Positions 2,490-45,235 of a stretch of 54,399 bases of DNA are shown in pieces (position 1 is the stretch's first letter; each line of letters opens with the position of its first letter). The stretch lies in the NCBI RefSeq assembly GCF_001194135.2, contig NC_068989.1, positions 31,503,597 to 31,557,995 on the forward strand. Direction: 5' to 3'. The notes under the pieces are model-generated. The model saw only the letters and a list, made by a program, of their open reading frames with translations, did not search any database and was not told the DNA's origin. A program made the position numbers and the translations under genes. Origin of the DNA: Octopus bimaculoides. Taxonomy: Eukaryota.

Positions 2490-4620
2490 GAAAAAAGATT
2501 TAAGAATGGATGGGAAGTATTTTCTAAATCAATAGTATGTATAAATTTTTTTAAGTGTCCGTCCTTATTTATTGGTTGGTCGTGGTCGGTTCTGTATTTA
2601 ATTGTGGTTTAACTTGTTAATAAATTGCCTTTATTTAGTCTTTGTTGTTGGTTGAATGAATCTGAGCACTTGTAGAGGGGAAATATTTTGAAATTGGGTG
2701 AGTTCATTCCTGCATAGATTGCAATATGACTGCTTAAAAGAATTTTCCTCGTGTTTTTGTCGCGGATCTGTTGGTGATGTGTCGTCATTCTGTTACGTAA
2801 CGATCCGTCCGTCTGACCTATGTAATTATGTTGGCAACCATTGCATGTAATTGCGTAGATCAGATTTCCTGTGTTGCAGGTGAGATTGGATTTAACCTTG
2901 AAGGTTTGGCCGTCATTAAATTTAAATTCTGGTCCCCCAATTAGGTAACGGCAAGTGCCGCACTTTGTTCTTCCGCATTTTGCGACAGTTGGGTTAGAGG
3001 TTTCTTTGTGCGTTTTTGCTCCGGTAAGAATGAGTTTTAGTATTTTGGACTGCCTTTTTTCTTTTGATGATTTGTTGTTTTTCTCTGATTTTTCTCAAAT
3101 TTTCACCTGTAAATAAAATGGGGAGGTTTTTGTGGATGTGATCAAATATCTCGGTATTTCTGAGATTGAAGGTTGACATAAATGGTAAAACGCTTTTCCT
3201 TCTTTTGTTTTTTTGTTTTCCTAAGTTCATTGATATCCATTTGCTTTGCCTTGTTTATTCCGTTGGTGATTATGACAGAAGGGAAGGCTCTTTGGATAAG
3301 TCCTTCAGTTCCTCTAGTCTTTGTTCACGTTTGAATGGTTCTGACACTATGGTACAAATTTGTTTTGCCAGGTTGAAGGGACTGTTGAATTTGCTGTGTT
3401 TCATGTGACATGATGTAAAAAGAAATACTGTTTGGAGTCAGCGGGTTTGTAGAATACCTTCGTTTCTATTTTCCCATCTTGGTTTGTGATTAGGATATCC
3501 AGAAAAGCGAGTTCTTTAGGGTTGAATTCCATTGTGAATTTGATGCTATTGCTGAGGTTGTTTAAAATGTTTTAAAATTCAGTTAGCTTGTCAATGTTAC
3601 CTGCCATAAGATAAAGCAATCATCCAGGTGTCTTTTCCAATTGTTTCTGAGTTGTGTATGGAAAGTGTCACCGAATATTAGAAGAGATTGGTTGTAGATC
3701 TTTTGTTCGTGGAATCCCATGACTAAGTTGGCGTATGTGGGGCCTACTTTCGTACTCATTGCCGTTCCCGATGTTTGGTAGTAACCCAAACCGTTGAAGA
3801 TAAAATAGTTGTTTTCAAGTATGAATCTGAGCCCATCAATGATAAATTATTTTTCTATGCGTGTTGGAAGTTCAGATTGGTGAGTGTCTAACCAGTATTG
3901 GATTACAGTTATTCCATTGTCATGGGCAATGTTGGTGTATAGGTTGACAACATCAAATGAAGTAAAAATTGCATGTTTATTTACCGTTTTTGGTAGATGA
4001 TTTAGCATGTTTAGGTCATCTCGTATGTAGCTCTATATGTTTTAGGAAAGGTTTTAGGAAAGGTTTTAGGAGGATGTTCAAAAATTTTCTGAATCTGTGT
4101 TTCACATTCCAGGCTTGCTATGATTGGTCTCAATTTAAAATCATCTGGAGGTGTTAACTGTATGTATTTGTTTGCTGAGGATTTACAGGCATCTCTTATC
4201 CTTTTGGCTTTATGGATTTTTGTTAAATCATAAAAAATACTCGTTTTGCATTTGAAGTGAAATATATAGTAAATTTCTTTACTGGTTAAGCCTTTGTTAT
4301 ATTTCTTTAAAAGAGTTGTGATGTTATCCAGTTTTCTTTATTGTTTGTAGGGAGTTGCTTTTTTGAAGTAGTTGTTGTCCCCTAGCATTGTAAGTGCTAG
4401 GTTTTCATAGCAGTTTCTGTCCATGATGACGACAGTGCTCCCTTTATCGGCTTCTTTGATAGTTATATTCGTATTTTCTTATAAGTCCAGTGGGTTTTTC
4501 CATTCATACTTTGTAAAGCTTGATTTAAGGTTTCTATGTTCAATTTTTTCAAAGGGGAAGTTCATAATGTATTCGCAGTAGGAATCTAGTGCTTTATATG
4601 CACGGGAGAAACATTACGTA
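2490..4620 (-). mobile_element. Penelope-like retroelement, degraded RT plus C-terminal GIY-YIG endonuclease
   Basis: Minus strand gives FDVVNLYTNI (RT motif A), YYQTSGTAM...GPTYANL (motif B), WKRHLDDCF (motif C), and CNGCQHNYIGQTDGSLRNRMTTHHQQIR (GIY-YIG with CxxC, about 2760-2850). Several stops and frameshifts. Confidence 0.9.
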
Positions 4621-5031: not shown

Positions 5032-5299
5032 NNNNNNNNNNNNNNNNNNNNNNNNNNNNNNNNNNNNNNNNNNNNNNNNNNNNNNNNNNNNNNNNNNNNN
5101 NNNNNNNNNNNNNNNNNNNNNNNNNNNNNNNNNNNNNNNNNNNNNNNNNNNNNNNNNNNNNNNNNNNNNNNNNNNNNNNNNNNNNNNNNNNNNNNNNNNN
5201 NNNNNNNNNNNNNNNNNNNNNNNNNNNNNNNNNNNNNNNNNNNNNNNNNNNNNNNNNNNNNNNNNNNNNNNNNNNNNNNNNNNNNNNNNATATATGTAT

Positions 5300-5468
5300 G
5301 TATATATAAACAGTATAGAGTAGAGTCGCATCAAGAAGGTTAAGATAAACTTATTTGGAAATGGATGTGTGGCGTTCAATTAAATAATGATATAAACGAT
5401 ATATATATACAAAAAACAGGACAGTGAAGACATACTGTTTTCTCCTCTAATTCCCTTTTGTCCATTTC

Positions 5469-7144: not shown

Positions 7145-7404
7145 CGAAAGGGTAACAGTGAATCGCCGTATGGAGCAGAATATCCAACGTTTCGGACTCA
7201 ATCCTTCGTTAGGGGACACAGAAAAAGAGAAGAGAGAGAGAAAGTCAAACAGAGTTTACATCCTCTCAGCTTGAAAAACTTGCTGCAACTCTGTTTGACT
7301 TACTTCTCTTTTTCTTCCGTTTTTCTCTGCCCCTGACGAAGAATTGAGTCCGAAACGTTGGATATTCCGCTCCTTCCGGCAGGTTCACTGTACCTCTTCC
7401 GCTT
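7142..7404. mobile_element. Small foldback element with a minimal hammerhead motif on each arm
   Basis: Arms 7142-7256 and 7287-7404 are imperfect reverse complements with a 30-nt spacer. Plus arm ccc-CTGACGA-agaattgagtcc-GAAACGTT-gg (7330-7362); minus arm has CTAACGA (G5A) at 7183-7215. Confidence 0.75.
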
Positions 7405-7454: not shown

Positions 7455-7560
<106 letters not shown>

Positions 7561-7566
7561 TTCTAT

Positions 7567-9124
7567 TATAGTGGGGTAGGCCGGTGTATGGGGTACTCTG
7601 GGTTTCTCGCTCGTAAGGGATATGCCTTACGGCGTATCTTCAGATCCAAACACTGCTGGCCTGAGACCTCTTTAACATATGGAGGGGGAAAAGCCTCGTT
7701 TTTAAGGGTAAGACCCTAGATGATTATCTCACTTTGCCACTATCCATTGATCTTCGGCCGCGCTGCCATCTTGCAGTCACCAAATCACCACGATGGTAAA
7801 CGATTGCTTCCCTTTGGCCTGGCTATTGGTTTCCGGCTGTGGTGCCACCATGCGGATTTCAATTGGACAGCAGGAATTTTCTAAAATGCAGGCATGGGCC
7901 GAAAATCTCCGTCCTGGAGTTCAGAATACCCCCTGGCATGAACGAGTTTTTAAAGATCTTCGCGCACTCGGCAATGCTTAACTTACCCCATGTCGTCGCG
8001 TTTGTGTAGAGGCCTGGGTTCTCGAGTATTTTCCATGCGATCAAGTATGTAATCTCCTCGTCTTGTAATTGCAAGATATGGCTGGCCAGTGATGTCACGT
8101 ATCTCCTTTCCGGGATTCTGAAGGGGGACAGATGATTGGAAATACGCTATTTGAGAGAGTTTCTAGTGCACCCACGTACTTCTGTGGGTGCGTGATGCCG
8201 TTGCGCCTGTTGCTGCTGTTGTTGTTGTTGGGTCCCGCTGGTGCCGTCATTGGTGTTATTGCTACTGGAGTTGGGGCTGCTGCTATTGGTGCTGGTGCTG
8301 GCGTTGGTGCTGGTGCTGGCGTTGGTGCTGGTGTTGACGATGGTGCTGGCGCTGGTGCTGATGTTGGCGTCGCTGGGGGTTGCATTGGTGCCGGTCATAT
8401 TCTCGTCCCTGCACTTGCTGCCTGTGTTACAGTCGTTGTTGCTGTTGCTGGTGCTGGCGTTGCTGTTGTTGTTGTTGTTGTTGTCGTCGCTGCTGCTGGC
8501 ACCGCCACCGGTGTTGGTGTTGTTGTTGATAGAGTCGGGGCTGCTGGTGATGGCGGAGGATGTGGTGGTGGCGACAGTGTTGCTATCGCCTCTGTCGGTT
8601 CTGCTGCTGTTGCCGTCATAGCCAGCGATGGAACTGGATCTGTTGCCTCTGCTATTACTACCATAGTGGCCAATATGCCAGGCATCGTGGACATCGGGAA
8701 GCTATTTGTGAGGCTGGTGATGATGGTGATGTCGCTGCTGTTAGTGATGCCGCTGCTGTTGTTAGCGATTCTGCCGTCCATGGTGGCGGTGGTGATGGCT
8801 GTGTTACCGGCTCTGTTCTCAGGTCCACATCCGTCATTGTTTCTGCCGGTGTTAAAGGCGTGTCGGGTTAGAACCTCGGTTTAATATACAACTCCTTTGG
8901 TTTCGCAGCGACCACAAGATGGCAGCGCGGCCGAAGATCGTTGGATAATGGCAAAGGGAGATAACCATCTAGGATCTTACTCTTTAAAAACGAGGCTTTC
9001 CCCCTCTATACGTTAAAGAGGTCTCAGGCCAGTAGTGTTTGGATCTGAAGATACGCCGCAAGGCGTATCTCCCTTATGAGAGAGAAACCCAAGGTAACCA
9101 CATACACCAGTCTACCCTACTATA
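7567..9124. mobile_element. Unclassified element with about 215-bp inverted terminal repeats around a GC-rich coding-like interior
   Basis: 7567-7780 and 8908-9124 are diverged reverse complements (e.g. cttcagatccaaacac vs gtgtttggatctgaag; gccgcgctgccatcttg vs caagatggcagcgcggc); the element sits between two microsatellites. Confidence 0.8.
7859..8837 (-). pseudogene. Decayed single ORF: Pro-rich N-terminus, cryptic CCHC knuckle, Pro/Ala/Thr linker, C-terminal non-repetitive domain
   Basis: MTDVDLRTEPVTQPSPPPPWT...RCPRCLAY, then after a 1-nt shift GHYGSNS; P/A/T-rich reading to about 8100 with one in-frame stop at 8395-8397; then TSLASHILQLQDEEITYLIAWKILENPG...FLLSN after a further shift. 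Confidence 0.45.
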
Positions 9125-9185: not shown

Positions 9186-9223
<38 letters not shown>

Positions 9224-9923: not shown

Positions 9924-9970
<47 letters not shown>

Positions 9971-42736: not shown

Positions 42737-45235
42737 ATAATTAATTAATAATATCTCCTTAAATTCATTAGTACACAGCTTACAAAAATTATTACCTATA
42801 CGATAGGATTTCGCCTTACAAACTATCTCCCATTGTAAAATGTACTTAATATTTTTAGATTTAAGTTCCCAAATATATTTACTAAGGTCAGTAGAATTAA
42901 TCAAATTTCTATTCTTAAAGGAGTGCATATGTTGAGTCACCCGTAATTTAATTTTATTAGAAGTCGATCCTATATAAATCTTATTTAAATTATAACCATT
43001 ATGTTTATTCCCGTCTATTAAAGTCACTATGCATTTATACACGACATCCTTCAAATTGCATTTATTATTAAATTTACATTTAGTCTTATCTCTACCTGTA
43101 CAATTAATTATATTCTAGTCCTCATTATTATTATTATTAGAATAAGTATTTAATTTATCTACTTTAATAATAATTATAATGTTACTAATAATAATGATGT
43201 AGATAATTTAGATTATATTAATTCTAAATTTAAATCTTGAAAAGAATCCCCGTATAATAGGGATTTACAGATTTTAGAAGATAATATTTGGAAGGTAGTG
43301 AAAAATATTAAATTTCAAAATATCCAAATTGATATAATGATTATTTAAGAAATCTAGCTATTAAAATAAAATAATTTAGAAATATGGATGGAATTATAAG
43401 TACAATCAGATAAAACTAGGAACCTGTGTAACCTACATGTCAAATTATATGATTACCTATTAGAAAAAGAAGTTAATAAAAAATATAAAATTGCTCCGGA
43501 TAATACTTTATATTCTATAAATAAGGCTTCTAAATTAATAATGTTGAAATATGAATTAGATAATAAGACTGAACCTTATGTACCATAGAATTACTTTGAA
43601 AGACCATAGGGATAATTTTTATTCTGACCCTAAAGTTAGGCTTATTTGTCCTTGCAAATTTTGTCCTAGGTAAATTAAGTAAGATCATTTTAGATAAATA
43701 TATTTAATGATATTAATTACCTTAAATTATGGAATAGTAATGTAGATACTTTAAAATGGTTTAATAATATTAAAGATAAAAATAGATATAAATTTATTCA
43801 AATAGATATTGATAATTATTCTTCTATTAATGAGATTGTACTTAATAAGGCCCTAATTTATGCAATGAAGAAGGTAGGTATGACTTATGATGAAGTCAAT
43901 GTAGTTAAAATGGCTAGGAAATCGTTGATTAAATATAATAAGTTGTGGGCTAGGAAAGATACTAGGGACTATTTTGATATACCAATGGGGGTACCTGATT
44001 CAGCAGAGGTAACTGATTTAGTAGGTATATATTTATTATCAGAGCTTCAACTTGAAAGTCATCCCTACATAAATAGGGATGACCTTTTATTACTAAGAAT
44101 TGCACCAATAGAACACTAGAATTATATAAGAAGAGAATATATATATGTTTAAAAGAAATGGATTAAAGATTACTATTTATAATGAGAATTATAATATAAA
44201 TTATCTAGATGCTAATTTTAACTTATCTACAGGTAATATCCAACCTCTTATGGTAATTATACATTCATGCAAAAAGTAATCATCCACCCTCTATTAAAAA
44301 CTCGTTAACATTTACTATAGGTAAGAGAATATAATTACTTTCATCCAATTTAGAGATCTTCGAAAAACATGCACCTTATTACAATAAAGCCCTTCGCGAG
44401 GCGGGATATACTAATGATATTAAATTTTTTAATAATCCGAAGTATAATTATAATTTTATTAGTAATGATTATAATATTAATGATCTATTTAATAAACATA
44501 ACCTTTATAATTATAATTTCTATTTAGGTAATTATGGTAAGAATAATAAGTATTATGATAATAAATTACATAACCATAAACATAATTGTAATGGAGACAA
44601 TAATAGATTTAAATTTAATTCTTTTAATGATAATAATAAATTTAATAATATAAATAATAAATACAATAATNNNNNNNNNNNNNNNNNNNNNNNNNNNNNN
44701 NNNNNNNNNNNNNNNNNNNNNNNNNNNNNNNNNNNNNNNNNNNNNNNNNNNNNNNNNNNNNNNNNNNNNNNNNNNNNNNNNNNNNNNNNNNNNNNNNNNN
44801 NNNNNNNNNNNNNNNNNNNNNNNNNNNNNNNNNNNNNNNNNNNNNNNNNNNNNNNNNNNNNNNNNNNNNNNNNNNNNNNNNNNNNNNNNNNNNNNNNNNN
44901 NNNNNNNNNNNNNNNNNNNNNNNNNNNNNNNNNNNNNNNNNNNNNNNNNNNNNNNNNNNNNNNNNNNNNNNNNNNNNNNNNNNNNNNNNNNNNNNNNNNN
45001 NNNNNNNNNNNNNNNATTTGGGAACTTAAATCTAAAAATATTAAGTACATTTTACAATGGGAGATAGTTTGTAAGGCGAAATCCTATCGTATAGATAATA
45101 ATTTTTGTAAGTTGTGTACTAATGAATTTAAGGAAATATTATTAAATAATTATAATACTTTGAATAATTCTTTTGATGAATGAAAAATTAAATGTAGACA
45201 TAAATTACTTTATTTATATAATAAGTTTAGCTAAC

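Follow-up and report, generated by a model that had tools for sequence, protein, structure and literature searches.

A decayed inverted-repeat element of Octopus bimaculoides as a probable non-autonomous derivative of Hydra-clade Penelope-like elements

The element considered here occupies positions 7567-9124 of a 54,399-nucleotide stretch of the Octopus bimaculoides genome (assembly GCF_001194135.2, contig NC_068989.1, positions 31,503,597 to 31,557,995 of the forward strand), which we refer to as the window. An original prediction, made from the letters alone, had described it as an unclassified inverted-repeat element with ribozyme-like termini and a decayed open reading frame (ORF) for a zinc-knuckle protein; the evidence below points instead to a relic related to the Penelope-like elements (PLEs). 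The inverted termini of about 215 bp that had been reported are real, blastn aligning 7567-7773 with 8915-9124 at 88% identity (211 aligned nt, E 4e-67), with an ungapped 160-nt core at 87% identity and a match that MAFFT prolongs to about 7779/8909. They enclose an interior of 1.1 kb that is indeed GC-rich, with 53% GC and 200-nt windows of up to 0.59, against 35.3% in the window as a whole, which contains many N gaps. Both arms also carry the outward-facing series CTGAAGA...GAAACC...GTA, running 7643->7594 (minus strand) in one and 9045->9097 (plus strand) in the other, and the sequence noted at their inner edges, CAAGATGGC, is likewise confirmed at 7765-7773 (as its reverse complement) and 8915-8923. 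Self-BLAST revealed no further copy of arms or interior elsewhere in the window, and a 22-mer from the arm had zero matches among metagenome and viral contigs.

The minus strand of the interior had been read as a single broken ORF of about 320 codons, and alignment with an intact paralogue upholds that reading. In tblastn, residues 37-82 of this paralogue (P0001, the O. bimaculoides protein XP_014771448.1, from chromosome CM046605.1) correspond to 8808-8695 and residues 82-327 to 8698-7895 in the next frame (E 5e-75). The switch of frame that the original prediction had seen at this spot is genuine, and is explained by a 1-nt frameshift at about 8696. A 2-nt indel relative to P0001 lies at about 8813, near the ORF start, and the natural stop codon is at 7861-7859. 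The locus that encodes XP_014771448.1 (L001, 4001-4984, on CM046605.1) is one of five to six related loci retrieved via protein look-ups; it has a premature TGA where other copies run on as CLHF.KFLL, and RefSeq labels its product 'uncharacterized protein DDB_G0287625-like'. From its sequence, XP_014771448.1 is likely the transposon remnant of a paralogous family copy, and not a host gene.

Much of the ORF consists of a low-complexity region, a degenerate (A-N-C)n trinucleotide repeat in which, on the minus strand between 8190 and 8800, codons begin with A in 62% of cases and end with C in 76%, with direct-repeat families at spacings of 9, 12 and 18 nt and 78-81% identity to L001. This repeat region accounts both for the high GC of the interior and for the open frames on its two strands. 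The longest open stretch in fact lies on the plus strand (263 codons, including an ATG-to-stop ORF of 250 aa at 8132-8884), and given that triplet-block shuffles give open stretches with a 95th percentile of 254 codons and a maximum of 312, a frame of this length is within their reach and openness alone is no evidence of coding. The repeat region of two further relatives, P0002 and P0003, is moreover in a frame other than that of P0001, which argues against a conserved protein in this part. Pfam returned zero family matches for every local ORF in any frame of 7567-9124, and exact look-ups of three window ORFs found none of them on record.

The identity of the element is revealed by the other end of the ORF, which the original prediction had overlooked. 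An exhaustive HMMER search of 1.84 billion representatives with the last 95 codons (7862-8146, minus strand) yielded 253 homologues at E<=1e-3, the best being P0001 (327 aa) with 68% identity over 84 C-terminal residues. The more distant homologues are short proteins together with several of 300-470 aa that have an N-terminal part resembling reverse transcriptase (RT) and share the motif order VVYxAxV...YIGxxxxFKxRxxNH...W.IL...CxLCxxE...LNxRxE...CRH. The Pfam GIY-YIG model (PF01541) scores 25.6 bits with P0155, 19.5 with P0135, and 18.0 with a second ORF of the window at 42737-43054. The remnant in our element keeps the R..H..F, W.IL, E, LNSRTE and CLH (CxH) motifs, and has decayed from YIG to VRG and from CxxC to GKLS, the latter position reading CKLC in P0001; the GIY strand is absent from both. 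Judged by these alignments, the ORF's C-terminus is the C-terminal two thirds of a PLE GIY-YIG endonuclease, and the ORF as a whole is an S/N/T-rich trinucleotide-repeat region fused to it. Neither the C-terminal 111 aa nor a chimeric translation of the arms retrieved anything in word-indexed protein searches; such a search overlooked even P0001, with which the query has exact words of 10-11 residues in common.

The PLEs of the Hydra clade are characterized by a CxCX5C linker and by an endonuclease that lacks the CCHH motif and has a CxxC before the conserved E and a CxH after the conserved N (Craig et al. 2021, PMC8557442); their hosts are aquatic invertebrates, including molluscs, and they insert into (TA)n (PMC8557442). 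The endonuclease features are all found when P0001 is taken into account: there is no internal CCHH, CKLC precedes the E, and CLH follows the N of LNSRTE. The linker is present in homologues (CNCRVKANC in P0087, CNCQKKDEC in P0135, CNCRNPTNC in P0013), its region is deleted in the window element and in P0001, and another relative, P0004, adjoins (TA)n. The label 'unclassified' can therefore be given up, as the endonuclease motifs are those of the Hydra clade, and the ORF is not a foreign cargo, its C-terminus being a remnant of the element's own GIY-YIG endonuclease. In substance, the interior matches the ORF of a known kind of element, of which the locus is a deletion derivative. The features of the locus are collected in Table 1.

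Table 1. Features of the inverted-repeat element at 7567-9124, in window coordinates.
Feature	Position	Strand	Basis or comment
3'-terminal region, resembling a pseudo-long terminal repeat (pLTR); source of the 5' inverted arm	7567..7779	-	3' of the ORF in L001 and L006; begun in L002
Hammerhead-like motif, element sense	7584..7653	-	helix I, CUGAAGA 7643-7637, helix II, GAAA, short helix III, GUA
3' untranslated region (UTR), stop codon to repeated part	7780..7858	-	contiguous homology to L001 4985-5062
Decayed ORF, ~326 codons	7859..8837	-	homologous along its length to 327-aa XP_014771448.1 (P0001)
Hydra-clade PLE-type GIY-YIG endonuclease remnant	7862..8182	-	253 homologues; alignment with RT-endonuclease proteins
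In-frame TAG stop	8147..8149	-	Gln in paralogue P0001
Degenerate (A-N-C)n trinucleotide low-complexity region	8190..8800	-	S/N/T-rich in the family frame
Alleged decayed CCHC knuckle, not a feature	8651..8693	-	family frame reads DVHDAWHIGHYGSNS
1-nt frameshift relative to intact paralogue	8695..8698	-	tblastn segments switch frame here
Body 5' leader, shorter than in other copies	8838..8908	-	L001 homology resumes at GGTCGCTGCGAAACCAAAGGA
5'-side inverted arm	8909..9124	+	88% identical to reverse complement of 7567-7779
Mirror hammerhead-like copy in inverted arm	9035..9107	+	CUGAAGA 9045-9051; helix II with two mismatches

The original prediction had proposed a novel class of retroelement that combines ribozyme termini with a gag-like CCHC protein, or alternatively a deleted DIRS-like element, on the grounds of a string at 8651-8693 that is close to CX2CX4HX4C and of the inverted termini, which DIRS1 also has. 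The letters of the near-knuckle are present as described, and it is the knuckle itself that fails. At the aligned site P0001 has NDHDARSVSHYSSSS, with no Cys or His ligands, and the candidate was rejected on the reading of the intact paralogue, NSFPNDHDARSVSHYSSSS, whose frame differs from that of CPRCLAY. Patterns of this quality, needing one indel and one substitution, arise 0.45-0.83 times per shuffled interior, with at least one in 33-54% of shuffles and three observed in the element, and a perfect CX2CX4HX4C occurs from composition alone on the antisense strand (8482-8523), in a Cys-rich artefactual frame. The Pfam zf-CCHC model has zero matches in any frame of 7567-9124. A gag-like cargo is thus unsupported by a family frame and by a pattern above chance, and the DIRS alternative is rejected for lack of a tyrosine recombinase and of RT/RNase H domains (Pfam) and of any internal region complementary to the termini (self-BLAST). 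We regard this model, in either form, as barely credible.

What the arms represent becomes clear from the other copies. L001 matches the body and 3' arm of the window element at 77-81% DNA identity and possesses a full 3' arm (5063-5308), whereas of the inverted 5' arm it has no more than the outer ~88-100 nt (3798-3886). The next ~95 nt are unrelated to the arms and homologous to the 5' end of L005 (z = 5), and homology to the window resumes at GGCCGCTGCGAAAAC, just inside the window arm; given that L001 and L005 share ~95 nt absent here, the window body is 5'-truncated relative to both. In the copy represented by L002/L003, which is 5'-truncated, homology begins at the equivalent of window ~8660 with no inverted arm upstream of L002, and the sequence passes the inner edge of the 3' arm and breaks off within it at the contig end. 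L006 has an ORF remnant followed by a full 3' arm (1277-1495, nhmmer E 8e-50), and L004 and L005 gave no arm match, the contig of L005 ending ~100 nt beyond the ORF. In every copy with a readable 3' side, then, the 3' arm has a fixed place and orientation 3' of the endonuclease ORF, and what varies among copies is where the body starts at its 5' end and how long the inverted arm is, the latter measuring 215 nt here and ~90 nt in L001.

By comparison of these sequences, the 5'-side arm repeats, in inverted and 5'-truncated form, the last ~215 nt at the element's own 3' end, and is set head-to-head with the body, so that element sense runs on the plus strand there. The combination of a variable inverted arm with variable 5' truncation is, on the same alignments, the insertion architecture of PLEs and not that of fixed terminal inverted repeats (TIRs), and in this respect the PLE-like character ascribed to the termini by the original prediction holds. 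The architecture published for PLE insertions pairs a 5'-truncated copy with a second one beside it, likewise 5'-truncated and inverted. Cervera and de la Pena described dual minimal hammerhead ribozymes (min-HHRs) that lie on opposite strands and are separated by 100-700 bp (PMC4209133). A purified PLE protein cleaves the two strands of DNA and extends both, with AT-rich DNA as its target (PMC11167929), which provides a possible mechanism for head-to-head copies. The RT-less layout of repeat region plus endonuclease remnant is found in at least four diverged copies, and therefore has been propagated, presumably in trans.

Long inverted termini that are 88% identical, with a TA that can be placed directly outside both ends here and in L001, are also what one would see in a non-autonomous Tc1/mariner-like DNA transposon with a TA duplication and long TIRs that had captured a fragment of PLE endonuclease and a microsatellite-like region; fragments of a Tc1-like transposase do occur in the window (HTH_SB, 56.5 bits, at 12180). 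We consider this origin very unlikely. Arms of 215 and ~90 nt, and the lack of an arm upstream of the 5'-truncated L002 copy, do not fit such an element; the variable 5' end of the body is like that of reverse-transcribed copies, and the 3' arm behaves like a 3' UTR in its constant orientation and distance from the endonuclease ORF. There is no similarity to the Tc1-like element of the window, and Pfam found no transposase in 7567-9124. As for the flanks, TA is expected by chance in DNA of 35% GC that is rich in TA microsatellites, and TA- or AT-rich DNA is a PLE target as well. (TA)n adjoins L001, is 60 nt away from the window copy, and is missing from the 3' flank of L006; because the genome is TA-rich, the TA flanks are only compatible with a (TA)n preference and are no proof of it.

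The immediate surroundings of the element are repetitive. A (CTAT)n(CTGT)n microsatellite at 7455-7562 adjoins its 3' end, and (TA)n runs (9186-9223 and 9924-9970) border a 700-N assembly gap 60 nt from its other end. TA-rich repeats near the element and L001 fit the (TA)n target bias of PLEs, yet such repeats are common in the octopus genome.

The head-to-head arrangement might alternatively have arisen from two independent events, a 5'-truncated copy having inserted first and a separate, extremely 5'-truncated copy of 215 nt later alongside it, oriented the other way. Hammerhead-bearing fragments that stand alone are frequent in genomes rich in PLEs, and an arm divergence of 12-14% is no proof that the arms were identical at insertion. 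On the other hand, the arms of one locus share private features and resemble each other more than they do any arm elsewhere: identity is 88% within the window locus and ~78% to the arms of other loci, ACTATA ends both window arms and ATTTTAA both L001 arms, and GGAU precedes the core in the window arms. The greater identity within a locus and the private termini favor a single insertion event or source. In addition, the same arrangement is present at the independent locus L001, and at neither locus does flanking DNA separate arm and body, and we therefore think separate insertions unlikely. Five arms can be aligned at their outer ends as far as a shared A-Y-T-W-T-R-A heptamer, and with so few copies an extra tail is not discernible. 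A pair of short interspersed elements was also entertained for the arms and rejected, there being no poly-A or simple-repeat tails at their inner or outer ends.

The ribozyme-like character that had been noticed in the termini takes the form of a hammerhead-like motif at the place where PLEs carry theirs. The family consensus, which equals the 3' arm of the window, can be drawn as a type I hammerhead. Helix I is formed by GUGUUUGG / CCAUACAC; helix II is 11 bp long, a single bulged base interrupting it at two points (U-A, [A], CGC/GCG, [A], CGUAAGG/CCUUACG); helix III is short, the five-arm consensus CCCAGGG being a 6-of-7 palindrome; and cleavage is predicted after GUA at 7594, ~27 nt from the 3' end of the element. 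In PLE min-HHRs, likewise, helix II is long and bulged and helix III minimal and near-palindromic, and the pair G10.1-C11.1 is conserved (PMC4209133). The catalytic boxes CUGAAGA...GAAA...GUA are present in both window arms and in the 3' arm of L001, and a core box is mutated in two of the five arms (GUGAAGA in the L001 5' arm, CUGUAGA in L006). In the mirror copy a local hairpin, UACGCC-GCAA-GGCGUA, competes with helix II. Across the five arms 81.8% of cells are paired, compared with 27-57% when partners are slid, and a relaxed hammerhead descriptor, written after the motif had been seen, has a single match in the window where 0.005 are expected per simulated window. It is plausible from sequence that the motif is a decayed hammerhead of PLE type at its expected place.

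A comparable motif stands in L007, a JGI metagenome contig (3300042062) that encodes P0004. The ORF of this contig is a canonical Hydra-type endonuclease that starts inside (TA)n, and 115 nt after its stop codon, at 1483-1545, lies a hammerhead-like motif in which helix I has 6 bp, helix II has 9 bp and is closed by G-C, helix III is a palindrome (CAAAUUUG), the site is GUC and the box CUGAUAA. At E<=1 it goes unreported by every Rfam model.

Our best explanation is that the locus is an old, dead insertion of an RT-less non-autonomous family derived from a Hydra-clade PLE, to which we assign a probability of about 0.8. With PLE endonuclease homology but no RT, the family is best filed as a non-autonomous Hydra-clade PLE derivative, and the endonuclease homology bears out the suggestion, already made by the original prediction, of an RT-less non-autonomous retroelement related to PLEs. 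Family RNA would have been copied in trans by the RT-endonuclease of an autonomous PLE, recruited via a common 3' region, and inserted into AT/TA-rich DNA. Processing of the transcript may once have been a task of the hammerhead-like motif, probably in dimeric form, and the inverted arm would have formed at or near the time of insertion, which is conceivable because PLE proteins cleave and extend both DNA strands.

A number of observations weigh against this explanation. RT is absent from all frames of 7567-9124 (Pfam) and from the relatives P0001-P0003 and P0006, which makes the element a derivative and not an autonomous member of the PLEs, and among the loci retrieved via protein look-ups there was no autonomous partner with a 3' end matching the arms. 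Neither a direct pLTR between 5' and 3' regions nor a tandem arrangement was detected at the locus, and there is no target-site duplication beyond the possible TA. An AlphaFold2 model of the 95-aa remnant (mean local confidence score, pLDDT, 70) had no PDB fold match by Foldseek and is uninformative, and a profile search of PDB sequences with the remnant gave only spurious CxxC matches to uS14. With regard to the hammerhead, the bulges in helix II are non-canonical, the 10.1-11.1 pair is U-A followed by a bulged A in 5/5 arms where G-C is expected, and covariation is not significant, the three double changes being reached by 54/500 shuffles. The Rfam hammerhead models, finally, gave no match at the gathering score or at E<=10, whether the whole window or the local 131 nt were scanned, nor did the scan turn up any other credible family. 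Given that Rfam also misses the motif in L007, its negative result is weak evidence.

A bolder proposal would make the family an RT-less PLE parasite that spread while keeping its ORF, with a variant hammerhead (U10.1-A11.1, 11-bp bulged helix II) cleaving as a dimer. It draws on the S/N/T-rich region and GIY-less endonuclease being intact as a 327-aa annotated O. bimaculoides gene. We think it improbable; were it true, cephalopods would offer a tractable, protein-retaining non-autonomous PLE and a new active hammerhead variant.

The arms differ from each other at p = 0.12-0.14 (Jukes-Cantor, JC, 0.13-0.15). Octopus transposable elements have been calibrated, copy to consensus, at JC 0.09 for ~25 million years and 0.2 for ~56 million years (PMC13282606), and taking each arm's share of the divergence with this rate suggests an insertion age of roughly 15-20 million years. 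Between the endonuclease remnant and L001 dN/dS is 0.45 over 84 codons, too few sites to judge past selection.

The endonuclease remnant belongs to a protein family that has the motifs, the aquatic-invertebrate hosts (molluscs included) and the (TA)n or TA-rich insertion sites of the Hydra-clade PLEs (PMC8557442), and the element shares with these PLEs a hammerhead-type motif in the 3' region and flanking inverted 5'-truncated copies. Unlike them it lacks RT, linker, GIY strand and CxxC, an S/N/T-rich repeat replaces the N-terminal ~700 aa, and its motif is non-canonical, whereas canonical hammerheads are 'readily detected' there (PMC8557442). MRC1 and other non-autonomous Chlamys elements (PMC8557442) and the animal non-LTR (long terminal repeat) retrozymes (bioRxiv 10.64898/2026.07.22.740005) are similarly RT-less, have a 3' or pLTR hammerhead region in common with autonomous PLEs, and are presumably mobilized in trans. 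Retrozymes, however, are short non-coding tandem repeats with a hammerhead in each unit, while the octopus family is dispersed, 1.1-1.5 kb long, and has an ORF remnant with partial endonuclease and inverted repeats.

With Drosophila virilis Penelope and other canonical PLE insertions with inverted pLTRs the element has in common variable 5' truncation and an inverted partial copy at the 5' side that gives terminal inverted repeats, and with canonical min-HHRs (PMC4209133) the long bulged helix II and minimal near-palindromic helix III. Penelope belongs to another clade, the 10.1-11.1 pair of the window motif is U-A against the conserved G-C, and the 30-40-bp 'tail' was not identified in the window element. 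Tc1/mariner MITEs (miniature inverted-repeat transposable elements) as well as long-TIR non-autonomous DNA transposons resemble it in inverted termini, a possible TA flank and the want of a transposase; the octopus family differs in the varying length of its termini, in its 5'-truncated copies, and in an interior that is a retroelement ORF with fixed orientation relative to one arm.

Other elements are present in the window. Directly upstream of the element, a near-palindrome of ~247 bp (7148-7394) is 79.5% self-complementary, its arms 7165-7215 and 7330-7380 being 90% complementary; it scores 65 bits with the plant MIR8562 model, far under the gathering score of that model, and its outer arm has CTGACGAAGAATTGAGTCCGAAACGTT, in which hammerhead-like boxes are followed by the palindrome ACGT. 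It may represent a further case of PLE 3' ends, here severely shortened, that stand head-to-head, or may be a foldback MITE. At 32893-34610 (plus strand) lies a PLE copy that is distinct from the element and larger, and whose ORFs give weak RVT_1 matches with a YVDD motif and a GIY-YIG match of 25.5 bits, above the Pfam cut-off; its endonuclease is of a type unlike that of the 7567-9124 element, and its 3' end enters an N gap. The ORF at 42737-43054 (minus strand) is the N-terminal half of a Hydra-type GIY-YIG endonuclease (VVYKCIV...IYIGST...CKLC), with an N gap cutting into it; it and the remnant are members of one protein family, with 23% identity in the multiple alignment, and it has no DNA similarity to the arms. 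The N-terminal helix-turn-helix (HTH) of a Tc1/Sleeping-Beauty-type transposase (Pfam HTH_SB, 56.5 bits) lies at 12180-12387 (plus strand), cut by an N gap and unrelated to the arms, and an ORF at 15314-15799 (plus strand) with an RVT_1 match of 26.2 bits, just under the cut-off, is probably a fragment of a long interspersed element.

The element is an ordinary transposon remnant, and its value lies in annotation: what had been an 'unclassified inverted-repeat element' of the octopus genome becomes a Penelope-like derivative, and RefSeq is seen to list a remnant of this family as an 'uncharacterized protein' in at least one case (XP_014771448.1). The element illustrates the mimicry of TIR transposons by PLE insertions, and the spurious ORFs and motifs to which trinucleotide-repeat regions give rise. 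The variant hammerhead-like motif, poorly covered by Rfam models, is a modest lead for ribozyme surveys, and the family is a further instance, this one from a cephalopod, of a PLE derivative that lacks RT but retains part of its endonuclease.

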